64,000 nucleotides of DNA from Klebsormidium nitens. Its lineage: Eukaryota; Plantae; Klebsormidiophyceae. The notes under the pieces were generated by a model. It did not search any database. It saw nothing but the letters and a program-made list of their open reading frames with translations, and had not been told where the DNA came from. This document shows, in pieces, positions 12,582 through 64,000 of the stretch. Location: NCBI GenBank assembly GCA_000708835.1, contig DF237357.1, positions 19,805-83,804 on the forward strand. Direction: 5' to 3'. The position numbers and the translations under genes were made by a program. Positions within the stretch are counted from its first letter, which is position 1, and each line of letters begins with the position of its first letter.

Positions 12582-15500
12582 TCACAAAGTTCGAGCCGTA
12601 TGTCTTTGTCTGCTTCGCGCCCTCTGCAGGATGATCCGAGCCTGGTCGAAAACGCTGGCGAAGTCATTCAAAGGAATCGTGAGGTGCTCCCCATGATGCT
12701 CCATGAACTCCGGGTTCTCCCCAAGAGTCTTGCAACCTTCGTCGAGTGCAACGACCTGCGACAAGTCACACGTGGCCTTGAATTTGATACTGCAAAGCGC
12801 CTAATTCAAGGCTACTTCGTGAACGAGGACACAAAGGGTTTCATAGATCGTTCTGATTTCAAGAACGGCATCGAGGGAGAGCAACGGACAACCATTTAAT
12901 GACAGAACGAGTAGAAAGTCTGCAAAGAGAACCGCGTATTGAGATGACGTCCCTGCGGGAACAAGCACACGAAGATCGTACTTCTTGAAGGTAGAAGGAA
13001 GATTCAATTCGTGAAACGTGGTAACAGCAGGAACCCAGGAAAATTGATTGATCGAACGGATTCAAAAGAACAGGGGCTATCGGAATATCGAAGACGAGCA
13101 ATTACCGGCACTTTCAGTCGGCCTGTTCAGAAAGGAAGCAGTAAAGAGGAAATATGGCAGCATGAAGGGAACGGAGAACCCCCGATAGACGGGTAACGAG
13201 CACGCAATCAGCATGAGTACCACGAGTACTCAGGAAAGAGCTGGAGAAGAATATTTAGGCACCTCACCGACTCCAGGTAGTTCTTTCCGGTCAGCACGGC
13301 CAGGTTCCGGTACAGCGGAATCCGCCAGTAGCAGTTCGTGACCTCGATCACGACTGCGTCCGGCGCCGCAAAAATCGCGTTCGTCAGCCCCGCGCCGTGC
13401 ATCCCGAAAATGATGCTCGCGTTCCTGGTCATGCCAATAATCTCCCTCAGCCGTTCCCTATACGTTCGGGTACTGCTTCCAGGCGCGTAGATCGAATACG
13501 GCACCGGGAACGCCGCCTCGACTTCCTTCGTGTTGAGCAGCGTCCTGACCGTGTTTTCCCGCTTGAAATACAACACGCGGTCCTTTTCCGGGAGCGGCGG
13601 TTTGCTGCCAAACCCGAGCGCCTCTGTGACGAGGTTAACAAACCCGGCGAGCATGGGGTCTTCGCTCGTGTCGGTCGTTCGGCAGTGCCACGGCCACCCC
13701 TCGTTCCCGACAAAGTAAACGCTCTCGTAACATCCCAAGTGCTGCGATGTGTTCTGCAGTTCGATGTCGACGAAATTGATGCTCGCGGGGCGGAATGCTT
13801 CCATAAAGACCGTGTGCCGTTCTCGGGCTGTTGCAATAAGTTCGGGGCTCTTGATTTCGTTCGGTTTCCCGGAGAGACACTCGTAGAATTCCACGTGGAT
13901 CCCCTCTAAGGATTCGAGCCCCAGCTTTTGCAAGGCAACATAAGTGGAGTAATAAGCGAGCCCCATCGAGTGGAAAAAGTTGTAGTCGCACCTGTAAGAG
14001 GAATCTTGGTCAGCACCTTTGGAGTTATCATGTCAATGACGCTGATTACGGAATTAGTGGAGTAGATCAGTCGTCGATTTTTGCACACTAAAGACACCGA
14101 AAATGTGATGAGCGGTTGGGGTTTCACCCATTCCAATCAGGAAAAAAGTCGAAAAATAGAAGCTTTGCTTTTGTCATCGTAGTGAAGAAACAATGTTTTC
14201 AGAATGCTCTTGTTCCTCATTCTCATGGCAGTAGGCTGGTTATGTTACCGTGTTGGCCGTGAGTTTCACCTGTCCTCTTACAGGGCTGGTCGGCAACTGC
14301 TGGAGCTAGCAAGGATCAAGCAAGCTGCTTTTATAAATGTTGGGCTTTTGATGCAGTCCACGTCTGATGTGTCACTTCTCTCACGACTGGGCATACTATT
14401 CCTTATCGCGCCACATCTCGAAAAGATGCAATTGCAGCTCTCTGATAGTGTGCAGTCCGAAGGCTTGGCATGCACTGTTGGTAGAAGCGATGCAGAGCGC
14501 AATAGCTGTCCTTCAAATTGCGCGAGACTTAAAGATCGATCTTCTGTACATCTGTCAATCTTATCACGAACCAAAGTTGACGAGGGCCCTTGCTTGTTGC
14601 CAATTTCAGTCATGAGAATGGTTTGAGACACGATTCTTGAGCTCGCCTCTTATGTAACCAAGCCCTTTCTTGTCGCAACTCCACCTCTTCCGACTCAACG
14701 AGCTTCTGCTAACCTCATTCTTGTTCTTCAAACGCTGAGGCTGGCTAGAAGATGCCCTTGCCCTTTTCCAGAACGTGCTTTTTCCGTTGCCTTAGGACCT
14801 ACCTCTTTGAGGAAAGACTTGAAGGAGAGAGTCGTCTGCCGAATTTCCACTCATTCGCTGTGGCAACTTGAAGCCTTTTCAACAAATCTCTTATAGAACT
14901 ACAGAGGGTGCATATGCTTGTACTAAGGGAAGAAAACGCAAAAGCAAAGAACCTTTGGCAACTACACAGGTATCTGACTTCCTGATGAAAACGCTTCAAT
15001 TCTGTAAGAGGAAAGAATAGAGACATTCAAGACTGTTTAAAAGGAGCAGCAAAAGAATTATATCAAGTCGTCAAGCAGTCACTTTGGCCCATTCTGAAAT
15101 ATCGGTGTAAAGTCATATCAAGTCACTGGCCATCTTACCCTTTCTGGAACAGATTCCTTTCAACAAGCGAATGAAAATCCAAGAACCAAGAACCAAGAAC
15201 CAAGGACCAAGAACCAAGAAGCAAGAACCAAGAAATCCAAGAACCAAGAAATCCAAGAATCAACAGTTAGCCAAGAAGAAAGAAGGGAAGAAACACCGCT
15301 GGTAGAAGACCAACAAAAGATCAGTATCAGCACCTGTTGCCTCACCCTTCTTGTGCGCAGTACACAATGAACGTCTTTGGCTTCCAGATGATACGCTGTC
15401 CCTCGGGCTGCAGCACCCCCCCCTCTGGAAGGGGACCCGCCATGTTGATCGGCAACCGTTTCCCCATGTGCCAACACGAGCGACCACCATACATTGCCGC

Positions 15501-20200: not shown

Positions 20201-23200
20201 CGTTTGCACAGTCAGCCCCTGGGCCGTCAGGTACCTGGAAAGAAGCAGCAGACCGACACGATAAGCGATCGCGTATACAAATTATTCAAGATTGCTGGGC
20301 CGGCTCCAATTGATCAATAACCTCGTCGCACCTTGGACGACCGTGCACCAATTCGCTCAAAAGATATGACGACCCGGATCCTGATCTCAAGGTCGGTCAG
20401 CACGTTTGACGAATCAGCAAGGCAGAGTCAACGCGAGCGTCCTCTTACGGAGCCCTATTTCTGCCGTCCATACGCGGATCTTGCTGGACTTTGATTCCGT
20501 GCCGCTACTGTCAGAGGGGCTCCCGTGACTTGCACATGAGAACTATTGATAACCATAGTTGAGCTACCCCGCCTGAGAAAGAAGCCGCTGGCGCCTTCAC
20601 ACAAGGCATTTTTGGTCCAAGCACGGACGATATGCAAAGCTTTTAGGAAACTGCCAGACCAATAACGGCTTTTATTAATTAAAAAGATACCAAACGCCAA
20701 GGTGGGCCCGCCAACCCAACCAAAACCTCCTAGCACTTCACATTTCTTGTGTCAAGGCGACCAACCTTTCGGCAATGCCACGCCCGACGTCGCCCTCCAT
20801 CGCCAGAAACACGTGGCCCTCTCTGACGTCATCCAGGCTTGTTCCCGGCTGTTCCGCTGCCGTTTCTGACTCCTCAAAGTAGATGGTGAACCGCATCAGC
20901 GTACCCGGCCCGTCCTTGTCTACGATCTGGATGTCTCCACCCATCATTCGAACTGCAAATGAACGAACGAACTTTCAGGGTTCGGATACATTGACAAATG
21001 CACAATCCCACGTTGAGACACAATGGTGAAACCCTGAAGAAGGAATCTAGTCTTGCCGTTGCCCTGAATAAGCTGAGATCTGTTCGTGCATGATTGAGCA
21101 TGAGCCCCAGACCTACCAAAGCTTTCCGAGTGAGAAAAATCATCCACTTATCGTGGGGCGGAACGAGCCCCACGACACGAGTATGATGCTCAATGACGGG
21201 CTTGCTGCCCAAATGGCAACAGGCCCCGGAAAAGCATTTCAGCCAAGGCGTCAAAACGGCCCTTGTCCTTACCAAAGTGGACTTTGACAGAAGCACCATA
21301 TTCCTGCATCCTTTGACTGACCCTTGAGCACTCACTGCAGCTTGCCTTCCATTCTCTTTCGCATACGCCGGTGCTTCGACACGTACACTTACGCAAAGGA
21401 GTCTCCAAACTTGCACAGGATGGTCTACTTTGGCCGTAACTTTTGTCAGAAGCTCTGCAACCAGATGCTTGGGCCCTTTGACCAAAACTCACCAAGCGAC
21501 CGAACGATGCCCAGTCCAAGCCCCGTCCCGCCATGCGTTCGCGTGGTAGAGGAATCTGCGACCAAAGCAGCAGTCGGGTTTGAGCTCCCGCATCGATGCG
21601 CTTTCTTGTTCGCTAGCCGCAGGTTTGAAAGACCTTTCCAGAACGGAGCTCAAGCGGTAAGAAGAAAAGTCCCTTTCGACTGAGGCTGGCATGGGGTGAG
21701 AAGTGTGTACGCAACGTGTGATGGTGTGTCGTCTTTGTTTGCAGGGGTAGACAGTTGCCTAGGCTTGAGACGCCGTCTCAAAGAGGCTGCCTTCGTCCCT
21801 GCACGTCTTTCAACAAATACCCGCCGAAAGATGCTTTGTGACAACCAAGTGCACGCGCTCGTGACAAAAGCTCGCGATTCTGCCACCTCAGAGAAGGGAA
21901 AAAGCAGCGGAATCCAGCCATTCGATACCTGCAGTCAATCCGACTTCCCTCAGATCTCCTTAACATTTTCCAGGTTTTAAATCTTACCCTGAGCGCTCTT
22001 GCTGACGAAAAATCATTTCGATGGCTTCTGTAGCGGACACCTTCATGAAACAGAGATAAGACCAACCCATTCATGACCCAAGGGCTTCGAACAGATACAA
22101 CCGTTCCGTCGTTGTTGACTAGTAGAGGAGTCTTTCATAAGAAGCAATCTCCAAGGTTTTTCGACCTAAAGAAAGGCGCACACGTGGACACGACCTTCTC
22201 ACCGGCTTGCACGAAGTTCTCAAACACCTTCTCCCGCTTTTCCGGGGGGATCCCTATCCCGCTGTCGTCCACCTCAAAAGTGTACCCCCTTTTCGCCGCG
22301 GAAGGAACCGGGGGAGCCGATTTTGGGGATGGGGAGCAGGGCGAAAACCACCCGCCGTTTTCTCGGGGGGTCTTTGCGTTGGGCGAGTCGGGGGGGCCGG
22401 CAGGCGCAAGCTCGGTTTGGGGAAAGGGGATGGGCCATGCCCTGGGAACAAGAGAGCAGGAGAAAGGGTGAGACAAAGAAGGCAAAAGGAAGGAGACGAA
22501 CACAGAACACAGAACGACGAGACAGGCAAGACAATGACAAGCAATTGATTGAAACAGGAGGTGAGCAACCCTTTCAACGGCACGGACAAAGACGGAACAG
22601 ACTTCAGCGTGACGCAATGAACGCAAGGCTTTGACCGGCAACTCGCGAAACGGAGAAGGAAAGAGGGAGTAGCGGAGAAAGGGTTGCATCAAGGTCAGCG
22701 ATCTCAGATATACGAAGGTGCCCACCTGACGAGAATGTGCCCGCCAACCGACGAGAACTTGACGGCGTTCGACAGCAGATTGACGACCACTTGTCGCACC
22801 CGAGCCTGGTCGCCTTTCACTAACCGGTCCATGTCCCCGGGCAAATCAAGACCAATTTCAATACCTTTCTTGCTACATTGCACCGCGAACATGTCGACAA
22901 TGGACTCGAGCTCGGCCGTGATGTCGAAGTCGGCCTTCTCTAATTCTAGACGCCCCGCTTCGATCTGCGAGGAAATGAGATAGGGTGTGAAAACTTTACA
23001 GGTCCAAAATGTAATGAGGACCGGCCAGACCTTCCCGTCTAACTTTTGTAAGTGTTGGGAATGAGAAGTTCACTGGTTCAAAAGGTTCAAAAGGTTGAGA
23101 CTCTATAGACTGATGCTTCAAGGTTCGCAAGCTTTGAAGGGCGCTTAAATAAGTAGGACTACTGCAAGCCTCATCGATTTCGGACGACTTGTACCTACTG

Positions 23201-47895: not shown

Positions 47896-49639
47896 GGTAG
47901 TTCTTCGTCTTCCTAGTTTCACCGCGTTGCATCTAAAGATAGGTTCGTTCGAAACCTTCTGAGAAAAGGATCGGGACACTATTCACAAGGACGCGTTAGA
48001 GATTGACTTGCGAAGGACGGCGAAGGACGGCTTGCTTGAAACCTTTGGTTCGAAGTTTGATTCAATTGCTCGAGGCTGTTATTTATGTTGGATGTCACTG
48101 GTTCTACGAGACAGCTTTGTTTTCTCACAATCACTGCCAATTGAGCGAAGTGTTTCTTCACGGTACTAATTTACAGAAGTGGCATGCACGCCCTCTCAAA
48201 GACATTGCAGACTCCCGGCGCTGCACTGACGTTTCACAACGGTTGGTTAAGATTCTAATCTTGATTGGAATCTCAACTATTGTGCACTCGAGTCAAATGC
48301 TATATGGATCGAACGCCCCCTAGGCCAGTACTAGACGCGGCGCATGCACTCCCAGCGCATGACTGCTAGCCTAGGACCCGACGGTCGTCATTTCGGCTTC
48401 GGTGTTCACGTGTCTACGTGATGGCCATGCAAATGTACGATTCAAGTGAATGATCGAATATTAAGTACGTTTTGGATGACCGGACCCTAAGACATCTATA
48501 AATTGTGGCGCAAGCCTGGCTGTCGGAAGGCCCGACCCGGCCGGATCAATTGGCTCATGTATGCATGAACGAATTGTAGTGACTGCCACTCGAGTCCGTG
48601 TTAGTCAGTTCCCGCTCTAGGTGGTATAACATGCAAGATTAGTTTTTGCGTGAAAAGTTGCACCTGAAGTTTGTGACCTCCAGCGCAACGGGCCCATGCC
48701 AAATTCAAGAATGATATAGTCCATACAACGCACTCGCATACAGACCTAGGAAAGTTGGGCCACATGTATTATCAACATACATTCATACCGCAGTGCCCCT
48801 GTATCCACTGGCAGTCGTTGGGCCGCGGGCTGCGCAGCGCCGAACGCGCCGTACTTCCAAATCTAGAAAGTCAGCTTCGAATGACTTGGAAATGAGTCAG
48901 GATGAGTCAGGCTGAAGTGAGCCTGGGGCCACTGGCTAGAACTCAGAACAAAGCCAGTCGAAGTACAGCATGGGAACCACTGGCACAGGGATTGTGCATC
49001 TGTTTGAACCACTGATCGAGCCGCCACGGAGTTATAAAGCCAGGCGAGCAGCGTCAAAAGCCTCTTGCAGAATGCAACCAGATGCAACTTACCCAGATCG
49101 TTGTCACATTCGCGCAAAATAACCCGGACTCAAAGACGCGAGCCTGCTGATTTGAAACCACACCAATCCGATCATCAGCGCTCGAAAGCCTCTCACTGAC
49201 CTGAATGATACCGCCACGTTTTGACAGTGCCGCAGAGGAATTCTTCCAAGGAGATTTTCCGTTTCTGTGTCACTCAAGCTGAGTATGTCAGCGGAAGCGG
49301 CAACCTGCGAACCGGGCGCCGAACTGCACACCGGACCGCTTCCACGTTCTGACTTCGCTCTTCAGCCGTCCGCCTGCGCAATCGCGCACGGCTGCCCATA
49401 CCGGACGAACCGGAGAAAGCCGTTCTTCCCCTTGTCGTTTGTCAGCTCTCCTTTGATTGACAAGAAAGGATTTGTTAGACGGCAGCTTTCCCCCCGTTGG
49501 CGCATCCTAGATCTCGGATCTTCCGCCGCTGAAGGGCAACATCTCGTGATCATAGGAGGAAGATATATATTGTTATTGAATTCAAGGGGGGAAATATTAC
49601 CCCTCCGGTGGATCTGCCGACGACCACACCAAAACTTGA

Positions 49640-49812
49640 TCTCGTATTCGGGCGCTCGGTGCGCTATCCCCGGTGCTCGAGTTAACGCAACCGGGTGCCA
49701 TCTTTGCGCTCGAGGGCTATCCTCGGCGCTTTCATCGAAGCAATCCCGTAAACTGTAGTCCTCGGCGTTATCTTCAAACGTATCCTCGACGCTCTCCGAA
49801 GTGCGGGCCGTT
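49640..49812 (+). promoter_or_regulatory. Cluster of TATCCTCGGCGCT-like motifs upstream of Cys-rich gene A
   Basis: About 6 near-copies ending in TATCCTCGACGCTCTCCGAAGTGCGGGCCG. The regulatory role is inferred. Confidence 0.5.
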
Positions 49813-50409
49813 CACCTACCTGGCCTCGACTTCGAAGCTCTTCTAGCGTTGGCAAACGAGGGAGGAAGGATGCTCCTATGACGGGACGGTTACTCGTATG
49901 TTGTGCGTCTCACTTGTCGGAGGCCTTCCCTGCGTGTCTTGTCTTCCTGGCTTTAACTTTGACCACATTTTGGGAAGCGAACTGCGCCGCGCCGCACGCT
50001 TTTCAATGCTCTCGCAAGTCAAGTAACCAACCTGCATTACTGTAATCCACAAATACCAGAGCGAGCATTGCAATGTTCAGCAGGAGGGCGCTTTAGGAGC
50101 AGAGCGACCGGGCTTCACAGTTACTTCTTTGAAACACTTGCAGGTATTCTTTCCTTATGGCTTGACATTTGTTGAGAGGTTTCAACGGTTGTGCCAGCGC
50201 TCTGACAGGAACCTTAGCCCGCTAGCCCGCCGCACAAGTCGCCCCTTTTGTTGGGCTCGGGGGCACTCAAAATCCGTTTTGTGGAGTACAACAGTCGACG
50301 AAGCATGAGAGGGCAAAGCTTGGGGAAACGGGAACCTAAGGCGGTGCAAAGCAGCTTCGCATGACTCCGCGACAAGGAAAGTGACACCAAAACTTCTAAA
50401 ACAGCAAGC

Positions 50410-53214
50410 ATGTCTATGGCACCGGCCTTTTCGATGCCGAGTACGTTGAGAGTGCTACTGGCTATGCTGGTTCTACTGGGGGCCACGCAGGGAGCGTTAG
50501 CCCAACAACACGGTAAGTATAGTATACTCACAATGTGCTACTATATAAACGTCAGGACAAAAATATGCAGAAGGTCAAACTCGAGTCCAGAGTTCAGATC
50601 GTAGTTATGATGCGGGGTGAAAATTCAGTTTGACCCCGGAATTATGCCTCTTAAAATATTAAGCATGATCGAGACTTGCCTGATCTCCCCGCTGATTGAT
50701 TGTTCAGACGATAACCTGCAAATCGTTATGAACTGAACCTTGCCCTTTTGGCACTCCTGCATGCCTCTAACATACCTAGTTAAGGAAGGCATCTTCGTGT
50801 ACCAAGCTTCGATGGTTCTGTATTCAATGTCTAATTCGCAGACACTCGGCACAGAATGCTAGCGCTATCTCAAGATCACCCTTAAAGGGTTAAAATCTCT
50901 CTCACAGCTGTCATCTAATAGAAATGATCCGTCTGATAGGCGATGTTTCTGGAAGGGTGATAAGCTTGACCAACGCCGCGGCAATCTGACGCAGTGCTGA
51001 AACGAGCCAACCCTGGGGCCCCCGTATGACGGCAGTCTCTCTGAGAATCCTGATCGAAACCAGATAGCATACCATTTTTTGGAATCCTCGTTTCTCTTCG
51101 TTTCAGCAACTGGGGGTTGTCCAGCAACCAATCCCGCATCAGCCATTCTCACCTACACCGTGTGCAACTTCGGGACGGCCCGCGTTGGGGGCGTTGTCGC
51201 CGCTTGTGCATATGACGCGGCGGGGAATCTTGACTATTCAAGTACTTTCGGCGTGGGGCAGTGCCCATCCGACGCTTCAGGTCATTTCTTCAAAGAAAGG
51301 AGGCTCGCTTCAAGTTGTCAGGTTACAGTCTCTTTTGAGCAACTTTCTAGTTCAGTGGAAGATGTTGTCTAGTCAGTCTGATGCATAGTAAGATTGTTCA
51401 AGATGACACGAAAACAAAAACTTTGCTCGGGATAGGCTTCAAGAATTGGGCGAAAAGTGCAACAGAAATCCCAATCTCTGCGAGGAACGCTCGTCCTTTC
51501 AAGGAACGTTCTTTCAAGAAAACACGCATGAAGTTTAGAGCCCAGCATAACAGAACTTAGCCATTTATTTTCTTCGGTTTCCTAGTATGGCATGCTTGGA
51601 GGATCTTCTGTTTCACTGCTTGCTGAACACAGCACGTGCCTGATGTTGGGCGACTCTTGCAGGCATTGTTCTGAGTCTTGTCGGGAACGCGTGTCCGTTG
51701 CCTGGATACGCGACGCTCGGCGAGCGTCGATTCCGAACCCTGTCTGTTGAATGTATTTACCAAGACTACGGCTTCGATGTCTCGTTCCGGTGTACCTATG
51801 ACGTCATCGCTGGAGCTTTGACACCTCCTCCAGTTTTTGGAGCCGTCTATGACCAACCTTGTCCCGGTGAGCGATTCCCGTACTCACGGCCTTTGCAAGG
51901 GACGGTCGAGAAATGGCCGCTCCGCTCATTTTGGAAAAAGAAGCTTTTTGTGGTCCGGGTTTGTTTTCGCTGGCTGCAAACCAAAAGATACGAGGCGTGC
52001 ACTGCACGAGCAGATATGCCTGCATTATGGCAACGTCATCCACATGCTCGTAGGCTCACTCTCTTATCACACGCATCATCGTGAAAGCTTGGACGCGACC
52101 GCCACTGACAAGCATATCCAAAAGACAAAAGCCTGTTTCTGTTGATCTGCTTGCCTGACATCTTCGTTGCTTGACACCTTTCTTGCAGCCGCTCTCGTGG
52201 CCCCACCACCGGTTCCCCCTCTTCCTTCGACTCTGCCCAAACCTTCTTCGACGGTCATCTATCTACCCTCCCCTGTTCCAACTGGCCCCTCTACGGTCCC
52301 CCCTTTTCCTTCTGTGCCGCCCTCTACCCCACTGACGGTCCCCGCTCTTCCCTCCCTTCGCCCACTTTCTCCCTTACGGTCGACAATCTTCCTTTCAGTT
52401 TGCCCACTCCTACCCCCACGCCACCGAATGGTAAGGCGCATACACGTTTTGTTTTCCTTTCCCTTTTGTTTGAGCGGACTGTCTGGTGAAGCTCAGTGCC
52501 CATAAGCTTTGTTGGTTCACCTTCCTCCACTTGGTGAGAGCCTCGTCCCTTAGCAGACAAAGCAAATTTCATCCATGCATTGCGAAACGAGAGATTTGCG
52601 TTGACGGATTACAAGGTTTACATGTATCACTCCAAGAAGATGAGACGTGGTTCGCAGTGCGATGGGCACTTCTCTTGGAGCCCGTACGTTGGAGCAAGGT
52701 TATACGTATAATTGCTACCAGTAGTTGGGGTTGACTGGATTCCTGTCAAACTCAGATTGTATGGTCGCCATCCGGCCGAACCCTAACTCTGGAATTAACC
52801 TCACCCCGGTTTCCGTGGGCAGTGTGTTCTCTCAAGGAAGCTTATCTCCAACTCAGAATCCAGCCCCGGGAATACTAAGACGTGACGAAGATCCTGATTG
52901 CTCACACAAGAGCTCCGAAGGTTAGAGCTCTTGAGTTTTGACAGTTTTCTGCCAGAAAGGTCGGCATGTATCAAAAGTCTCCTTAATCAACTGATCTGTA
53001 TACTCTGCCAGGTCCGACGTCCGTCTGCCAGGCAAACGTAACATGCGCCAGCTGTCTCACTGGCTGCAACACCGACCGGAACTGTTCCGCCGGCTACATT
53101 TGCGCTGACGGCTGTCGCGGCGCTCCTCCCCCGACGTCTGTGATGATGCAAGGTTTCAAGGGCATATGCCTGCCCAATTGTGGTACCAAGCCGAATGCTA
53201 CTAACGGCTGTTAA
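50410..53214 (+). CDS. Secreted Cys/Pro-rich modular protein, paralog A (signal peptide, two 4-Cys modules, Pro-rich linker, 10-Cys C-terminal domain); linker exon is not a multiple of 3
   Basis: Exons 50410-50512 (MSMAPAFSMPSTLRVLLAMLVLLGATQGALAQ), 51107-51280 (GGCPATN...VCNFG...ACAYDAAG...QCP), 51663-51866 (NACP...ECIY...RCTY...PCP), 52189-52430 (Pro/Ser/Thr-rich, 242 nt) and 53012-53214 (CQANVTCASCLTGCNTDRNCSAGYICADGC...CLPNCGTKPNATNGC*). All have canonical AG/GT. Confidence 0.75.
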
Positions 53215-53879
53215 ATTTAAGGGCAGCGACATTAAGAGCTGGGCTTGCGTGAGACGGAGCCACTGCATGAACTTTACTAAATGTTGTGCGGAAGAAACAA
53301 AACGATAAACTACGAGTTCGCCGAGACACGTCAATCCGATTTGGGGCTTTAGTTGCGCCGGACCAGTACTGTATTGCTTCTAGGAAGTCATTCATTGTTC
53401 ACCTCTAGTAAACAGCGTCAAGATCTGAATGTACATACGTCGCTTCATGTGGCTGTTCTGTGGATGGCTGAATGTTCGAATCATGGAAGATGTCTTTTGT
53501 ATGTAAAATCCAGCGGAAAGTGCACAGTGGACAAGCGTGGCCAAATTGCATCGTGCACATGTACTTGCAAAGTATCTATAATGCCGATCGCAATATCAAT
53601 GATCCATAAGTCGACCATCATACTGGTCGCGGCCCTCGGTGAGCTTGAGGCGTCTCACATTTGATTTCAGGGACGCCGCTTAATACCACCATCATCAGGT
53701 AGAACGGTCAAGAATCAAAGTACCTTTGAATCAGAAGACAAGCGTCGACGCGCAAGACATTAAAGCGCCCCGCATCTTCCCTCCGTCCCCTAATTTCTCA
53801 CCGCAGCAAGGTCTCAAGCACGCTGTGCTGCCGCTTCAACGCGTCTGCGAAGTCAGCTTGCACTTGGCCACTAATCTCG

Positions 53880-55640
53880 ATTGTCTCGTTCCGCTCCTGC
53901 TTACGATAATAACCGCTTCAACGCCTCGGCCGAGAACAGCCTGCGCCCAACTTTAGTTTTGTGAACTCCAGTTTCTCACGTCTCCTCATATCATTCAAGT
54001 CGTAACCTGGGTCGCCCACCTTTGCCATCAGGTCTTTCGTCATCTTGGCAACCCGGAACTTCATAAAGCCGCGTAGTTGTCTTGAAAGATCGTCATTATT
54101 GTCGCTCCTAAGACGCGGCCAGACTCTCGCGATCCTGGCGCGCTTGAAAACACAGCTTTTCGTAAGCCTAGCAGCTGGATCGCATCGCGCAACGCGCGGG
54201 CGTCGCCGCTCAATCTACCGGAAGTAATTCCGCCGGAATCTTGCCGTCTTCCAAAACAGAAGCGCGCCAACTTCTAGCGCCCGCGAGGAAAGGTTGTGGG
54301 AGGCGCACCACGTGTCCTCGTCCAGCGCAGCAGCCGCACCCCGCCAAGCTCACCCACTCGATCCGCCGTCTTTTGGCTGTCAAAGTCGCTCTAGTTTATC
54401 GGCTTCTGCTTGACTTGATCTGCTTGACTTCTGCTAGGCGAGCGGAACAACCAACCAACCGGGCTAGCGCCAGACGCTCTTCCGTGTACCGTGACCATCC
54501 ATTGCCATCCGGAACGGGCCGCGAGCTAGCGGAACAGCTCGGTTCAGGCTCGCGCGCAACGGACCGGCGTGCTCAGGGGGTGCGTGCAGCTGAATGGCCG
54601 CCCGGGACGCGTCGCAACTTAATCGGCCCCGGTTCGGAACCGGAATGGCCTGCGACTTCGCGCAACGGACTGGCTGAGGTTTTCCGCGCAACGGATTGGC
54701 CCGGGTGGCCCGAGGTGCAGCGGAATGACCGACCAAGAAGCGCTGCAGCAGAACCGGGCCCGGTTCTATTGAAGATGGAAGGAGGCCGTTGGCTATTGTT
54801 GGGTCGCTTGAGACTGGGTCCGGTTGAGAATCTGTGGAATGGTCCGTGGCCGCCAGCTTTCATTGGAACACAGCCACTCATTAAGGACTGGAATGTATTG
54901 GCGCTGAACAATCTGGTAACGTACAGATTCTTCCATCAAGGCGTCTGGTCTAAAAGCCCAGCCGGAGTTCAGAAACGCCCGCGGAATAGATCTGCCGGAT
55001 CCTTTCCACTCCAACTAGAGTGGAACGATGGGCATGCCAAGCGGAGGAACGGCTTGGCCGTAAAGGGCCGACTTCTATCCCCGGCGCTCGGCGCTCTATC
55101 CTCGACGCCCTATTAGAGCTCAGCGGCCGACGTTGGCGCTCGTATCAAAGCAATCCTTGCCGCTATCCTCGGCCCTATCCTCGCAGCTAGCTGAGGAAAC
55201 TTTTCTTGGACGCCCTATTCAACCCTATTCTAGGTAGGCGCTATCCTTGGCGCCTCTTCCAGAGTTTCCTTGGCGCTAATCTCAGAGTCATGTCCTCGGC
55301 CCCCTGAATCTCGACTCTCTCCTAGGCGCTATTCTGGGCCTAAACTTGATCCAACTCTCCTTGGCGCTAATTGCCAAAGTATCCTCGGCCCGAGGGCCCG
55401 AGTCCCGGGGCCTCTCTTTCAAAGTATCATTGGCGCTGGATTCCAACCCATCCTAGTCGCTGATCTCCAAGCTATCCTCGGCGCTACTCTAGTCCACAGT
55501 ATCCTCGCCCCTATCCTCGACGCTCGCCGAGGTGCGGGCCGGTCATCTGGACTCAAAACTAATTTCATGGTGGCTTCCGAGGTAGGAAGGCTGCTCCAAG
55601 AGTTGGGACAGTGTCTCGTCCGTTGTGCGTCTCACTAGCG
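53880..55640 (+). repeat. Upstream non-coding block duplicated with the Cys-rich gene unit (homologous to about 61330-62760)
   Basis: Colinear shared anchors: GACGCGGCCAGA...CGCGATCC, CCCCGCCAAGCTCACCCACT(T)CGATCCGCCG..TTTTGGCTGTCAA, CGGAACGGG, GGCTGAGGTTT..GCGCAACGGA, GTGCAGCG.AATGACC, then the TATCCTCGGCGCT array. Confidence 0.85.
55076..55545 (+). promoter_or_regulatory. Cluster of TATCCTCGGCGCT-like motifs upstream of Cys-rich gene B
   Basis: About 15 near-copies ending in TATCCTCGACGCTCGCCGAGGTGCGGGCCG. The regulatory role is inferred. Confidence 0.55.
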
Positions 55641-55986
55641 CCTACCAGGGAAGGACGCATGTGCTCCTGCGTGAGTCAGCTGAGTCACCGAGTCAGCTTG
55701 GCTTCATCAAACCTGCTTACAGGCTTGCTCCGGTGCTAAGCTGGCTGATAATAATGTAGGGCTTGCGACCTTTCACTCTTAAGGGCGTTGGTATCAAGAG
55801 AACGGACCGCAAGATTCTTTTCATAGAAACCCCTTCTCCCTCAAAAGCAGAGCTAGCAACGGGACGGCACTTCAAGACGAAGCCTCAAAGAAAATAGGAA
55901 CCCTAAGGCCGTGCAAAGCAGCAGCGCGGAATCTCTTCAAGCCAGGTGAAGGTCTCGTCGACTCCTCTCAAGCAGCTGACGTGACT

Positions 55987-58900
55987 ATGGCAGCGGCGGT
56001 TCCGGTGCCCACTACGCTCGGCATGCTGCTGGCACTCCTGGCCATTCTGGGAGCTGCGGGGGGAGCGTCTGCGCAGACTTATGCATGTATGTGATATGTT
56101 TTCCGACAAGAGGGAACTTTGAGGCCGTACACGAGGTTGGATTCAATTTTAAGAGCGCAATGTTTGGAGTGTTTTGATATCAGTGACCGCTCTATGATTG
56201 TGTCTAAGATAGTAATGCATCCAAGAGTCATGAGACCCACCCCAGAAACCACCGTATGCTTTGTGGTATTGCGTCGCCTCACTTCCCGTTGCTTCATCTC
56301 TCGAATGATACATAGCCTGCAGATTGTACTCGGAAGAACTTAATCGTACTTAGAAAAAGTGCGTCTTGCTTGCAGATATTAAGCTAGCCAGAGACTCATT
56401 CGATCTTTGGACCGTTTGGCAAGGGATGCTATCTCAAAAATACCCGTTCAAAGGTTCAAGCTTGTCCAGCAGTTGCTTCTCAATCAAGGAAACCGGTTTG
56501 ATGAGGAGTTCTCATGGGAGAAGGGTCGAGCTGACCCACATACTTCGACGCCGTGCTCAATCATGACTTTGGCCAGTCGTAAATTAAGGCGCCCTATGAT
56601 GACAACACAGCTTCTTCTAAGCAAACTGCCAATTTCAGTGAAAATCTTAGTGGTCACTTAGTCGGTCTGTTGCTGAGTGAAAGTGTTGAAAGTAGATGAC
56701 ACCGAAATTGGCAGGTTGTTTGGGAGAAGGTGTATTTGTGAAGGTCCTTGAAATCAATTTCTCAAACATCCAATCTTTGAAAAAGTTCCTCTCCGTTTTT
56801 GTTGTCTTTGATCCAGCCGTTGGAGGGTGCCCATCCACGGGGGCCTCAATAGGGGTCCGGGAATCCATTCTCTTCCAGGTTGGGTGCCGCTTCGGCACAC
56901 CTCCAAACAACGACAACTGTTTCTATGACACAAACGGGGATCCAACCGATCCACAATGCCCATATGCGGTTGATACATCAGGTACTGTTCTCAAACAAAT
57001 GATGCTCGCTTCGACGTTAGTTTGCTTTACCATTGAAGCGGGAGAAACTGCACCATAATCACCATGACAAAATCCTGCGTAGTTATGCATCGAAGGACGT
57101 CTGAGTCGGTCCAACAGGCTCCACATATCCAGGCACTTCTTTTCTTTCTAGATCACTTCTAGCGACGGTATGTTTACAAGTTTTGCCGTCCACTGCAAAC
57201 GAAAGACGTGGTTGTTCTTGTCAACATTCGGTGACTCTCGCAGGCAATCTGAGAATCGTGAGGAACGCGTGTCCGTCTGTAGCGTATGTGGGCTCGACTC
57301 CATACCCAATCCAGGGTATCGCCTGCGTCTACAACTTCTATACCATAAGGGAATTCTGTTACTACAACTCTCGCTCTGGACAGCACATTCCGCAAATGGG
57401 GGTCTCACCGAGCGGCCAAACTGTCACTATTGGCGGCTGTCCCGGTGAGTCGACTGTAATAGTCCAGACCTGGCAGTGCCAGATAAAGAGCAGTACAGCG
57501 CTGCCGCCCATTTCTAAATATATTGGACGATTCTTAGACTACCTCATTGCCGGGTCTGCGATGGCTTGTTGGATTACTAGGAACCGAAAAGCGTATCTTG
57601 ACGACGCCCAGGCTAAAATCGCAGACGAAGAGCCATCATTGTTTCAAGATTTGAATGAGAAAGGATGCAGCGCACCCATTCTGCTTCGCAAATCGCTGCG
57701 TGTTTTGATTGGACACGTGTCAGACGCAGCGTCCAAGCGGAAAAGCGGCTTCGAAGATAATTACGTCACCCAGTCTGTTTGGAAGACATACGATGTACCG
57801 AGCAAAAAGTATCAATTGATTGCGGGTTTCCCTGTGCTTCGAAGCGTCAAAAACATCTGACTGGTTTCGGTAATAAGGAATGTCGCCTCGGGCCAGACGC
57901 GGCTTTCTTGAATGGCACATGCGAAAGAATTGTCGACACGTGTCGGCCTAATTTTCCCAATGATTAGTGGGGGGTTAAGTGGTTCAATCTGCTGATGATT
58001 CAGATTATTTTAGTGTGGGCCTTGACCAGGTCTACTTAGAATATATTTGACAAAGCTACAGCCAGAAGAAGGGGTCTTTGACCTTTGCGTACTCCCTTTG
58101 GACGGAAACCCGCAATGAGCCCATAAGTTTCATCACCTGATCTCGGTATTGCAGGCGCTCTTGTACCCGTGCCACAGCCCGCTCTTCCTACCCTTTTGCC
58201 CACTCCTACCCCCACGCCATCGAATCGTAAGGCGAACACACGCCTTGAGCTTAATTCCGATTAGTTTCAGCCGACTGTCTGGTCAAATTGGGTTTCCCAT
58301 TTCTGTTGGTCCGACTACGCCATATGCATCGAATGGTGAGACAGACACACGCTTTGATTGTTGTCTCCAAAAGTTTCAGCCGACTTTCCGTAACGCTTAG
58401 CTCCCAATCCGTATATATGTTGGTTTGCTTTCCTCTACAGGGCGAGAGACTCGTCCCTTTAGGCAGGCAAAGAAGATTTCCCGATGCCTTCATAGGAACG
58501 AGCAGCATCCAAGAATCATAGATCAATTACGGACCTGCCTAGCTCGAGGCTTTGTAGACTTTCAGCGCAGTCAATGCCCCCGTTGCTTTCATTCTCCAAT
58601 TGATAGCGTGCACTTTGTTTCCGGAACCCTCTCCCCCCTTGTGAAACTGCTGTCTATGCACAATCTGGATTGTGTGGGCATCTTAAGCTGCAGCAGCAAG
58701 CTCTTGTACGGTTTTGCAGGATCTGTGAAAACTTGCACGAAAATTGGCACGAAAATTGGCACAAAAATGCACGAAAATTGGCACGAACCAGTGCTGTCAA
58801 GCTTGACCCACCTGGCTCGACGACGTGCTCAACAATCAAGAATGATATGAGCCAATCCTCTAGGCGACAATATCTTGAGGCTCCTCAAAAACCCGATCTC

Positions 58901-61005
58901 GGACATCAAATCTCTAACATGTTCCTCGTCGACATCTCATTTTGTCTTTGGTCCAGCGATCGGAAGCTGTCCATCCACGGATAAGTCGCTGCAAGCCAAC
59001 CTGACCAGTGTCGTGTGCGGCTACGATGAACCTCCAATGTACTGTACATACGACACGAGCGGAATTCCAATATCGGATCCGAGATCATGCCCAGCCGTCC
59101 AAGTTGGTCCCACAGGTAATACTTTGAACCACGGAGGCTTGTTTTGTGCCTCGCTTTGCCTTATTGAAGTAGACGACTAGTCAACCTGATGATTATCACT
59201 TCAATGACAATATCTTCATATTTTCGCGCAAAGACACATTTAAAGTGCGTCTAACGTCAAAAAGCTTCATATCATTTCCCTTCAGCCTTGTCAACAAGCT
59301 GACTAAAGGTTCTGAATCCTGTAACAATCTGCACAATATTTCTGCTTACTTTTGCGAGGCACGAGCGTGATCCCGCCGCTTTTTTGGTGACAATTGCAGG
59401 CAGGCCGAGGATGAATCCGAATCTCATCGGAAATGCGTGTCCGGTGTATGGGTACTACTCCGCCCTCAATAAGGTTGCAGTGCGATATGCTGCTTGCATC
59501 TACAATTACATGAACACTTCATACACCAATTGTGCCTACGTCCTCACGTCCGTAGTCAACAACGTCTCAAGTGGGCAAGTGACCCCTCAAGCTGGCAACT
59601 TCCCCAACTGTCCCGGTGAGCGAAACTGCTTAAAACTACTTGGGATATATACGGACGTAATCGAAGAATTCGAACGCTGCATCTCGTCTCGACTTCCAGA
59701 AACGGACGCAGGCTTCGTCTGTCTGGGAATTGACTCCCGGTTTCGCTGTGGCTTGCGTCTGAAGTTTTACAATGAGAACCATACGCTTGATCTGCAAAGG
59801 TAGATCTCCTGATCGGTCCAAATGTGGACGGAACCGCGCCACTACCATTACGAGGTTCCTGAATTTCCATGTTACTTCAACATTTCTGATACATAGACAG
59901 TAGCAGCTGCACATGAGTGGTCAGATCAGATTTCGCACGGAACGCCTTTTCAAGAACCGTCTTCTCGAACAAATTGTTCGCTGTTCTCTCATCAGTCTGA
60001 CAAGAGCATAGTTGATGGAAATATATACAGCCTGCAGCTAAACGGCCCAAGTCGACTGAAACGAACGACTCGTTCTTTTAACAAGACAATACACAAGAGC
60101 GTGACCATATAACGATTCAAGACCCAGTGAGATCTTTGCTGCAGACGCTCTCATACCCTTTCCACCCCCGCCTGCTGCCGCCCCTCTTCAAGCATGTACG
60201 TTGGGAAACAGAAGCAGCGACGCATGCCCTGCACAGGACTGCGTTTGCGGCGGTTACGTGGGCCGCACTCTGCCCGGTAGGCATCAATCTCTCAATTCCG
60301 CATCAAAAACTCGTCTGACATACAAGATGTCGATCAACAAGTCGCAACCAGATGGAGAGTTGTTCTCGAGCTCATCCGCTGACGGAAGTTATGTTGACAT
60401 CCTAAGAGCCGAGGCAAAAGTATTATCCAGAACTCCAAACCTGAAGTTGATATGCTCGCGCAGCTCTCGTAATACCCAAAAGTCGTCCTCAGTGCCGCAC
60501 CGCGACGTTCCCTGCGCTCAAGTGATCAGCTCAAGTGCCTTACTTTTCATATCACTTGAAACCTTACCAGGGAAATTGATGTTCAGCGTTGGGCAATCGC
60601 AGTCATAATAGTTTTGCGTGATACTAGTCAAAGATCCGTAAGTAAACCTGCACACTGCATGCTTGGTCACAATCAAAGTGCTTCTATTAAGGGCACATAG
60701 ATCAGTACTTGGAGACAAACCTCAACTTCCGTCTCGGTTGACTTTTCTGACCTGAACGACATGAAAATGTTTGCCAGAAACATTCCAACTCAAGATCATC
60801 TATCCACAATCTGCCAGATACTTCGACCGTCTGCCACGCAATCGTGACCTGTGCCAGCTGTCTCACTGGCTGCAACTCCGACCGGAACTGCTCCGCCGGC
60901 TACAACTGCGCCGGCGGCTGTGGCGGCGCCCCTCCCCCGCCAGGATTCAACGGCACGTGCCTGCCCAACTGCGGCACTAAGCCGAATGCGACCAGCGGCT
61001 GTTAG
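55987..61005 (+). CDS. Secreted Cys/Pro-rich modular protein, paralog B (about 383 aa): signal peptide, [module 1-module 2-Pro linker] x2, 10-Cys C-terminal domain
   Basis: Exons 55987-56086, 56817-56981, 57244-57444, 58155-58226, 58957-59115, 59400-59615, 60145-60195, 60818-61005. All introns are phase 1 and all internal exons are multiples of 3, giving one uninterrupted frame from MAAAVPVPTTLGMLLALLAILGAAGGASAQ to CLPNCGTKPNATSGC*. Confidence 0.88.
58200..58390 (+). repeat. Diverged copy of exon end plus donor in Cys-rich gene B
   Basis: Real: CATCGAATC|GTAAGGCGAACACACGCCTTG...AGTTTCAGCCGACT (donor 58227). Copy: CATCGAATG|GTGAGACAGACACACGCTTTG...AGTTTCAGCCGACT (donor 58336). Confidence 0.8.
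58727..58786. repeat. (GAAAATTGGCAC)n 12-bp intronic minisatellite
   Basis: About 5 near-identical direct copies. Confidence 0.85.
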
Positions 61006-62449
61006 GGAATGCGTGGAGTGACAGTGAGAACGAATTACTGCTGTCGAGTAGCATACATGAACAGAAGCGTGACGCCCGAGAGAATGTGGAAGCAATTAAG
61101 GGAGCTTGGAGTTGGGGAACGGATGCTCCAGACTGGTTTCGAAAAATCTGCAGTTACGAAGTTTAAGGCAGAGCAACCACGTGAAAACACTTCAACAGTG
61201 AAAGCGACATAATGAGTGACCAGGATTTGAGTAGGTGCGCAAGTCTCAGGATTTGGGCCTCCTAGCAATCAAGGTGAATAACGCGTTCAGACCGTAGTAC
61301 TGCGATCGGTCGATATCGATTTGTGCCGCAAATGGCTCAATCCCAACTTTCAGTGTTAAATCCATTCTCTCACGTACCCTCTCGTTGTAATCTGGATCCA
61401 GATTTCTTCATCAGCTCTCTCGTTATATCTCAAGCCGCGTGGCTGCCTTCAACCCCCGTTGACTTAATAATGGCACGCCAATCGTCGCTCCACGACGCGG
61501 CCAGAGCCCGCGATCCCGGCGCAAACTGAAAACTTCTTGCACGCGTAGCGTCTGCTCGCGGCTTGCATAAGGTTCGGCTTGCCCAACGCGCTTGCGTCGG
61601 TGCTCAGATTCTGTCGTCGCTCAAAGGCGGACCGCGCAATTCTGTACCGCCCGCAAATATTGTTCGTGAGATGCGGGCCACGTGTGTACGTCCTCCGCAG
61701 CAACCGCACGTCCCCGCCAAGCTCACCCACTTCGATCCGCCGCTTTTTGGCTGTCAAGTGGCTTCTCAGCATACTGATTCTGCTTGGCTTCAACAAAGGC
61801 GTCCAGTCAGAGCAGAACACCAGCCGGGCTGGCGCTAGGCGCTCTTCCTCGTCTTGGAAACTCTTCACTGCCAGCGGAACGGGTCGAGACCTTGCGTAAC
61901 ACTTTGGCTGAAGCTCGCGCAACAGAACGGGTGGGCGGGCGGAGAGTGGGTGACCAGGGCGCGCCGCAGCTAAACCCCCCGAGTCCTGACCGGAATGGCC
62001 TGCGGATTAGTGGAACGGATTGGCTGAGGTTTGTGCGCAACGGAAAGGCCTGGATGGCCCGCCGTGCAGCGAATGACCAATCGTGAGCGCTGCAGCAGCT
62101 AGATCGCGCGCTAGGAGCGGGCCCGGTGCCTTTAAATCCGGAAAGGAGGCCGTTAGCTAGGCTGACCCCAGCCGGTTGAGCGTCCGGTTGAGAACCCGTG
62201 GAACAGCGCGTGGCCAAAAGCTTTCATTAAAAGCAGCAACTCCTTAAAGACATCGGACCAAAATGGGGCGGCACGGCACAATCCGCTCCTCGTTACGAGT
62301 CGGCCCATCAGGACGTCTGGTGGAGGCCCCGGCCGGAGTGCAGCAACGCCAGCGGAATACATCGAGATCCTTTCTACCCCAACAAGGAGCGGAAGGATGG
62401 GCATGATAAGCGGCGGAAGAGCGGAATGGGTCGGCCGTAGAGCGCCGTC

Positions 62450-62682
62450 TTTGTTCCTCGGCGCTCGGCACGCGATCCCTGGGCGCTTTGATCGACGCGA
62501 TCCTCGGAGCACTCCCTATATTCTCTTAGGCGCTCAGCAGCGGCTATCGTAGGTGCTAATATCCCTTGGCGCTACGCTATTTGTCATCCCCGATGCTTTT
62601 CCCGGCGTTATCATCCTCGGCGCTCTCCTGGGGCGACATCCTCGGCCCTATCCTCGACGCTTCCCGGGGTGCGGGCCGAATT
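62450..62682 (+). promoter_or_regulatory. Cluster of TATCCTCGGCGCT-like motifs upstream of Cys-rich gene C
   Basis: About 12 near-copies ending in TATCCTCGACGCTTCCCGGGGTGCGGGCCG. The regulatory role is inferred. Confidence 0.5.
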
Positions 62683-63058
62683 TTCAATACGAGGCTCACC
62701 CAGAGATGGCCAATGAGGAGAAAGCTCCTTTTGCGACGGGACAGTCTCTCGTACTCTTTGCGCGCACTTCTTTCTACCATGTGTCAGCTTGGCAATGTCG
62801 CAACGGCTTACGGACTAGCTCGTTCCAGTGCAGCTAAGCTGGCTCAAGGCGGCTTGCAATGCATCGGTATAAAGGGCGTTGGGATGGAAAAAAGACTTCG
62901 AGCTTATCTCTCTTGGACGCAGTCTCTTCCCTCTCAAAAAGATAGGCAGACGGAGGGACACTTCAAAAAGGAACCTGTCAAGGCGTGAAAAGGTAGCAGC
63001 GCGTGACTCTTTTCAGGCAGGTCTCGGCAATAGTACATCTCAATCAGCGGAAGTGACT

Positions 63059-63827
63059 ATGGCAGGGGCGGTTCCGGTGCCCACTTTGGTGGGAATGCTT
63101 CTGGCACTGCTGACCTTGCTGGGGGCCGTGCGGGGGGCGTCTGCGCAGTATGCCTGTAAGTAATCCACTTTTCAGGGGGAGGGCAATTTGAGACTGTACT
63201 GAAGGCCAGAGATGCGTGGAAGGTGCAATATCTTGATCGTTTCGATCATGCGGATGCTTGCAAAGGTCAATTTGCTGCCTGTGCACGTATCAATACTATA
63301 TACAGGTGTCCTTTTTTCTCAAGGTGTTCAAAAAAATAAACTTCCCAACCCTGCTTTTTCCGAAGTCTGGCAAATCCTACTATCAGCTTAAGATCATCGA
63401 AAGGTCCAGGATTGTCTTAGATTCTCCATATTGTCATGAAACCTGTCCCACAGTGAGCTAATATTAATTCCATTTGGGAGAAGGATCACGATTGACCGAA
63501 GTGATCTGACGCAGTGCTGAACACGCTAGACTGATGTGATTCAACATCCCATAATGTTATGCGGCGCTCTATAATATCTGAGGATCCTTAAAGTCCAATC
63601 TCACGCGTCCACTGCTGATCATGAACATCTTCTTGCGTTTTCCCCTTCTTCATTCCAGCCGTCGGAGGGTGCCCGTCCACGTCCCTAAACCCGGCTTTCC
63701 CTCTCCTCACGGTTGTGTGCTCCTTCGGAACACGTCTGAGTTTCTACGAATGTAGCTACGACGCAAACGGGGATGTTCTTACCGGTGAAACATATCCGGC
63801 GTGCCCAATATCGGTAGATCCAACAGG
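63059..63827 (+). CDS. Secreted Cys-rich modular protein, paralog C, 5' portion (continues beyond the window end)
   Basis: Exon 63059-63155 (MAGAVPVPTLVGMLLALLTLLGAVRGASAQYA) and phase-1 exon 63658-63827 (VGGCPSTSLNPAFPLLTVVCSFGTRLSFYECSYDANGDVLTGETYPACPISVDPTG) are homologous to the first two exons of gene B. Confidence 0.85.
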
Positions 63828-64000
63828 TAGGGGTTTTTGAGTAGCGAAGACCACTTTTGCAACTCGCTCTGTCCTCTAAGCACTGGCAGGCAGAAGTGCA
63901 ATAGCGTCACCGTGACAACAACTTCTTTTGTTCATTGATGCAACGAAACAAGTATAAGAGTCAGTCCAAGAGGTCTACATTATCAAGCTGTTCGTTCCTC

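Follow-up and report, generated by a model that had tools for sequence, protein, structure and literature searches.

A gene cluster for predicted secreted cysteine-rich proteins

Little is known of the extracellular proteins of Klebsormidium, a key model for the adaptation of green algae to land. We asked what is encoded between positions 50410 and 64000 of a 64,000-nucleotide stretch of Klebsormidium nitens contig DF237357.1 (hereafter, the window), a eukaryotic, intron-rich sequence of about 50% G+C. Judged from its sequence, this interval holds three co-oriented, tandemly duplicated genes, A, B and C, coding for disulfide-rich modular proteins that are predicted to be secreted. A regular-expression search for the pattern CP..Cx[YFW]..Cx[YFW]..CP gave seven stop-free matches in the window, all on the + strand and between positions 51118 and 63807, compared with none in each of 30 shuffles. 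The seven Cys modules fall into two types, M1 (four copies) and M2 (three copies). Each module contains four Cys in 45–60 residues, with CP at both ends and the motifs Cx(Y/F) and CxY(D/N) in the middle. When the window was scanned with profiles in its six frames, no copy of M1, M2 or the C-terminal tail described below emerged beyond those counted here, and an Rfam scan of the window gave no match.

The signal-peptide exons of the three genes are paralogous at the DNA level, forming direct repeats at 50395, 55966 and 63038 with ATG codons at 50410, 55987 and 63059; direct repeats also reveal paralogous linker and tail regions. The common architecture consists of a signal peptide, one or two M1–M2 pairs that are each followed by a Pro/Thr-rich linker, and a conserved C-terminal domain with 10 Cys (the tail). 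An earlier note on this DNA had described at least three co-oriented paralogs with signal peptides, Pro/Thr linkers and a 10-Cys tail, and the three paralogous signal-peptide exons, the seven + strand modules and the linker and tail exons listed in Table 1 bear out that description. The module spacings that it had given also hold, save for one M1 spacer of 15 residues in gene B where at most 14 had been allowed. The C-termini of genes A and B, read directly, lack a hydrophobic end, in agreement with its remark that no transmembrane or glycosylphosphatidylinositol signal was evident; in both tails the stop codon stands immediately 3' of the last Cys.

Gene models

Exons were called by combining the nearest acceptor preceded by a polypyrimidine tract with the nearest good donor around each module (Table 1). 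Every module is contained in one GT–AG exon that is in phase 1 at both ends, and the same symmetric phase 1 is found for all internal exons, each of which holds one module or one linker. Blocks can therefore be duplicated without loss of frame, as exemplified by the internally duplicated M1–M2–linker block of gene B, and this exon structure accounts for the expansion of the family. Gene B consists of eight GT–AG exons totalling 1152 nt (383 codons, 26 Cys). Its frame closes with a single terminal stop, all of its split codons are sense codons and none of its exons contains an internal stop. Gene C continues beyond the end of the window; its M1 reads CSYDANGDVLTGE.

The exons of gene A total 926 nt. 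Its linker opens in a B-like frame (ALVAPPPVPP..) and must close in another B-like frame (..PTPTPTPPN), which indicates that one base is missing within this C-rich exon. Since the exon is one base short of frame, the tail of gene A is out of frame as assembled. An internal intron that would rescue the frame was considered and rejected, as the linker exon contains no GT..AG intron that repairs it. The one-base break is a genuine frameshift or, alternatively, a mistake in the assembly.

Table 1. Exons of genes A, B and C, in window coordinates.
Gene	Exon	Content	Positions	Strand	Remarks
A	1	Signal peptide	50410..50512	+	Hydrophobic core, ..ALA/QQ; phase 1 at its 3' end; donor gtaagt; paralogous in DNA to the signal exons of B and C
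A	2	M1 (4 Cys)	51107..51280	+	Phase 1-1
A	3	M2 (4 Cys)	51663..51866	+	Phase 1-1
A	4	Long Pro-rich linker ending PTPTPTPPN	52189..52430	+	242 nt, one base short of frame
A	5	10-Cys tail and TAA	53012..53214	+	Phase-1 acceptor
B	1	Signal peptide (..ASA/QT)	55987..56086	+	
B	2	M1	56817..56981	+	
B	3	M2	57244..57444	+	
B	4	Pro/Thr linker (..PTPTPTPSN)	58155..58226	+	
B	5	Second M1 (M1'), the copy nearest bacterial P0007	58957..59115	+	
B	6	Second M2 (M2')	59400..59615	+	
B	7	Short Pro linker (FPPPPAAAP)	60145..60195	+	
B	8	10-Cys tail and TAG	60818..61005	+	
C	1	Signal peptide (..ASA/QY)	63059..63155	+	
C	2	M1	63659..63826	+	Remainder beyond the window end

A 62-nt unit occurs once in gene A (52422-52483) and twice in gene B (58218-58279 and 58327-58388, 109 nt apart). 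The unit holds the donor of the linker exon (..CGAAT/GTAAGG) together with a downstream TTTCAG/CCGACTGTC, and is a local duplication of a segment bearing splice sites.

Divergence of the modules and the tail

The tails of genes A and B are 79% identical, with a ratio of nonsynonymous to synonymous divergence (dN/dS) of 0.21. Modules are 29–47% identical and their dN/dS values range from 0.26 to 0.92, on short alignments in which synonymous divergence (dS) is saturated for pairs involving gene A and saturated or noisy in most module pairs. The least saturated pair, the M1 modules of genes B and C, has a dS of 0.54 and a dN/dS of 0.92. These data fit a constrained tail combined with fast-changing modules. 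Gene conversion of the tail may be an alternative source of the identity between A and B. In comparisons of introns and intergenic sequence with exons, shuffled sequences gave the same global DNA identity as the real ones. The earlier note had called the family diversifying. The lower identity of the modules relative to the tail suggests as much, but with dS saturated or noisy in the majority of module pairs this does not amount to a demonstration.

M1 and M2 can be aligned with all four Cys and the CxY motifs in register. Comparison of the two profiles with hhalign gave a probability of 2.9–6.7% (P 0.005–0.015), which is weak. The idea put forward earlier, that both are versions of one ancestral four-Cys domain, is therefore suggestive on the strength of the Cys and CxY register and gains little from the profile–profile comparison; common descent of M1 and M2 from such an ancestor appears plausible.

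The public gene model

A word-index search with the frame at 57105-57857, which carries the first M2 exon of gene B, returned a sole protein, KFL_004080080 (GAQ88199.1; here P0001) of Klebsormidium nitens. When the M1+M2 part of P0001 was used as the query, only the public model itself was returned. Mapped onto the window (48092-58261), KFL_004080080, a chimera that unites parts of genes A and B, confirms four exon boundaries of gene B. It is composed of an exon at 48092-48163, the linker of gene A (52190-52432), exons 1–4 of gene B and a read-through into intron 4 of gene B, and it reads the gene A linker exon in a frame other than that following the M2 exon of A. The modules of gene A, the second module pair of gene B and both tails are present in no protein returned by the protein searches made. 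The public annotation thus conceals a family of predicted secreted proteins built from an undescribed disulfide domain. A literature search for the gene identifiers found no paper.

These features raise the possibility that the array is decaying or silent, a set of duplicated gene relics with little or no expression. Such relics would be in keeping with a gene A that is one base out of frame, with an annotators' model that is chimeric and reads into an intron, and with the absence of papers mentioning the gene in the identifier search. However, gene B is intact in its eight exons, its splice sites, its 26 Cys and its single terminal stop, and the low dN/dS of the tail indicates purifying selection. 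Moreover, gene A is broken within a C-rich stretch of low complexity, and an assembly error there is plausible. We consider a decaying array improbable.

Comparison with known families and folds

Searches and fold predictions were run on single exons. No match was found in Pfam with any of the module, tail or public-model sequences, nor in NCBIfam. PDB sequence searches with the M1, M2 and tail profiles gave nothing significant, and an ESM Atlas search with M1+M2 gave no usable match. AlphaFold2 models of M1 reached a predicted local distance difference test score (pLDDT) of 56 with four aligned sequences and 65 with six, and contained, at this low confidence, one beta-hairpin spanning the CxF and CxYD motifs. 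When the M1 model was compared with known structures, the best Foldseek match in the PDB had an E value of 3.6 and the best match in a wide VIA-align search a Z score of 2.6, so no fold was assigned. A weak model together with an absent fold match is no proof of a new fold. The view in the earlier note that no family can be recognized agrees with these blank searches of Pfam, NCBIfam, PDB sequences and folds. We conclude from the sequence comparisons that M1 belongs to an undescribed domain family; on present evidence, the locus represents a new domain family and not a new kind of system.

Several known families share features with the modules. The M1 core, xYDxxG(D/N)xL(T), resembles the hairpin of YD/Rhs repeats (PF05593), and the M1 model places its beta-hairpin there. 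However, YD repeats form runs of 20-residue units whereas M1 is a stand-alone four-Cys domain, and the likeness is confined to the motif: the RHS_repeat profile was unmatched and there was no Pfam match at E ≤ 1. Pherophorins, chimeric hydroxyproline-rich glycoproteins and PAC-domain (Ole e 1) wall proteins are likewise secreted, combine Cys-containing globular domains with Pro-rich linkers and form tandem-expanded families (PMC7177597). The algal modules differ from them in the number and spacing of Cys and in lacking Ser-Pro(n) repeats. Neither the pherophorin profile (PF12499) nor that of the PAC domain (Pollen_Ole_e_1, PF01190) was matched, the latter domain being defined by six conserved Cys as against four in the modules. 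Read directly, the linker exons contain PTPTPTP, a single PPPP and scattered PP(P), and none of the SPPP(P) repeats of extensins.

For the tail, membership of the knottins (inhibitor cystine knots) found no support in Pfam, and the best PDB sequence match was heteropodatoxin 2, with an E value of 1.7. DUF7107 (PF23416) and Dickkopf_N (PF04706) gave no Pfam match at E ≤ 5. In the ESM Atlas, the nearest proteins to the 10-Cys tail (60820-61002) were small Cys-rich Myxococcota proteins, including DUF7107/Dickkopf_N-like clusters, with scores of 0.79–0.86 that fall below the level of 0.9 for a usable lead.

A bacterial protein with a pair of M1-like modules

In leave-one-out tests, a held-out paralog scored 32.4 bits with the M1 profile and 7.6 bits with the M2 profile, and at most 23.5 bits when the single public protein P0001 was the query. 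Since the M1 profile generalized best, it was used for an exhaustive search of 1.84 billion proteins and was the one profile searched there; the M2 profile and P0001 alone were rejected as queries on these scores. A composite M1+M2 profile anchored on P0001 was also rejected, because MAFFT stacked M2 on M1 and hmmbuild would retain the chimeric N-terminus as profile positions.

The M1 search returned nine proteins at E ≤ 1e-3. Seven of them (P0002–P0006, P0008 and P0009) were rejected, their scores being sums of partial repeat matches of at most 12 bits each and lacking the module pattern. They comprise repeat proteins that are free of Cys or unrelated in other ways, for the most part YD-type ('TYDANGNLLT'). 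The M1 core, CxYDxNG(D/N)xLT, lies near the bacterial YD-repeat consensus, and the Cys-free YD-repeat proteins P0002–P0006 head the search through summed partial matches. No fungal protein appeared at E ≤ 1e-3, so that the resemblance to repeats of agaricomycete fungi suggested in the earlier note is unsupported for M1. A search for the tail in metagenomes found none.

P0007, a metagenomic bacterial protein of 371 residues encoded on a 1333-nt contig of an ENA metagenome, behaved differently from the seven rejected proteins. It gave two near-full-length matches to the M1 profile, of 21.9 and 24.3 bits, with an E value of 3.6e-4 over the whole library. It contains the four-Cys module pattern twice, with all invariant residues and the spacing of M1', and shuffled versions of its C-terminus scored at most 10.3 bits. 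In the reciprocal comparison, a hidden Markov model built from the bacterial modules gave 32 bits on M1'. The two modules lie in tandem at the C-terminus, behind a Pro/Thr linker, in a protein with an N-terminal export signal. A related protein, P0010, also shows the four-Cys pattern. P0007 and P0010 thus share with the algal proteins the CP..Cx(Y/F)..CxYDxxG..CP pattern, the M1 spacing, the tandem arrangement after a Pro/Thr linker and the export signal; they differ in being single open reading frames, in their unrelated N-terminal domain and in lacking an M2-type module or a 10-Cys tail. P0007 is the only credible candidate for an M1 relative outside Klebsormidium nitens. As its score is marginal and P0010 is missed by the M1 profile, the link is probable but marginal, the first to a bacterial module that the locus offers.

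The N-terminal domain of P0007 has hundreds of bacterial relatives, including metagenome-assembled genomes titled 'uncultured delta proteobacterium', and has no match in Pfam or NCBIfam. The C-terminal domains that these relatives bear beyond the Pro/Thr linker are quite different, and the four-Cys pattern is seen in P0007 and P0010 only. In the bacterial family (P0007 and P0010–P0062; loci L001–L003), a conserved N-domain of about 230 residues with the motif MGECCGCPLTPAGIETFSV is joined by a Pro/Thr linker to highly variable C-termini, some of which carry Ice_binding/DUF3494 or DUF1554 domains.

The likeness of P0007 and P0010 to M1 could instead reflect convergence on a small disulfide-stapled beta-hairpin of the YD type, with the module family itself confined to Klebsormidium. 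The marginal E value, the failure of the M1 profile to detect P0010 and the tendency of the CxYDxxG core to attract spurious Cys-free YD-repeat matches are all consistent with convergence. It accounts less readily for two full-length matches that have identical Cys spacing and all invariant positions, or for a reciprocal score of 32 bits where shuffles stay at or below 10.3 bits. We regard convergence as doubtful, though it deserves serious consideration. A bolder proposal would take M1 to be a mobile binding module that crosses kingdoms, transferred horizontally between soil bacteria of the delta-proteobacterial or Myxococcota type and a streptophyte alga that lives on land. After its capture on phase-1 exons of the alga, duplication of exons and of genes would have multiplied the module into a diversifying extracellular recognition family on a conserved Cys-rich anchor. 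We advance this scenario as a speculation with a distinctly low chance of being correct.

A possible role in the wall or extracellular matrix

What might these proteins do? We hypothesize that they are exported to the wall or extracellular matrix, where the conserved tail would be the part they share for anchoring or assembly and the fast-diverging M1/M2 pairs would bind variable ligands, either glycans or surfaces. We give this reading a probability of about one half. The bacterial module pair stands behind a Pro/Thr linker, in a slot that other domains occupy in related proteins; this is the usual place of a binding module and favors the binding hypothesis. The arrangement recalls carbohydrate-binding modules (CBMs) on Pro/Thr linkers in bacterial secreted proteins, where a small disulfide-rich module likewise sits in a swappable C-terminal slot. 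It differs in that M1 matches no CBM family, and binding by the module is putative. Should binding to wall polymers or to foreign surfaces prove correct, the proteins would become candidates for a part in adhesion, in wall assembly or in interaction with microbes in an early-diverging, land-adapted lineage.

Several of our results weigh against this hypothesis. The bacterial link consists of one protein at an E value of 3.6e-4; P0010 was missed by the M1 profile alone, and a search of 10 related loci from bacterial genomes and metagenomes (L001–L010) yielded no further copy of the module. The structure models are of low confidence, and the saturation of dS leaves diversification of the modules undemonstrated. 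Gene A is frame-broken as assembled, and because the sole public model is chimeric, it lends no expression support to the gene models proposed here.

A purely structural role would assign the proteins to the wall glycoproteins. Hydroxylation and glycosylation would be expected on their Pro-rich linkers, and their Cys modules would act as knobs for cross-linking or packing, as in chimeric hydroxyproline-rich glycoproteins, and not as specific binders. The signal peptide and the Pro/Thr-rich linkers, which extend over about 80 codons in gene A, suit such a role, as do the N-glycosylation sequons in the tail and the many Tyr that adjoin Cys. On the other hand, the linkers contain no Ser-Pro(3-5) extensin repeats and those of gene B measure just 17–24 residues; pherophorin, PAC/Ole e 1 and other wall-protein families are unmatched. 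Furthermore, fast divergence of the modules beside a conserved tail is not predicted by a purely structural role. We find it unlikely that the proteins are structural glycoproteins only.

The same divergence would be expected of secreted factors for defence against, or competition with, soil microbes, Cys-rich proteins with antimicrobial or anti-adhesion activity whose duplication and module divergence would reflect an arms race. The alga is land-dwelling, its genes form a tandem array of fast-diverging modules (dN/dS 0.92 for M1 of genes B and C) and the tail has a knottin-like Cys spacing, with the weak heteropodatoxin match noted above. Yet that toxin-like match is not significant, no known antimicrobial family is matched, and dN/dS on the short alignments never clearly exceeds 1. 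We attach little weight to a defence role and continue to prefer ligand binding by wall or matrix proteins.

Other features of the window

Two copies of a G+C-rich element, each about 830 bp long, lie 3' of genes A and B (54275-55101 and 61645-62478, 69% identity), and a partial copy is present at 49781-49914. We rejected the element as a second gene because it lacks codon periodicity, abounds in indels whose length is not divisible by three and is unmatched in Pfam. It is probably either non-coding sequence that was copied along with the gene units or a dispersed repeat. Elsewhere in the window, exon-sized frames on the - strand (13208-13966 and 22135-22725) gave matches to a GT61-family glycosyltransferase (E 1.4e-10) and, under the Pfam cut-off (24.5 versus 26.4 bits), to HATPase_c, a domain typical of histidine kinases. 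These frames appear to belong to ordinary neighbouring genes.

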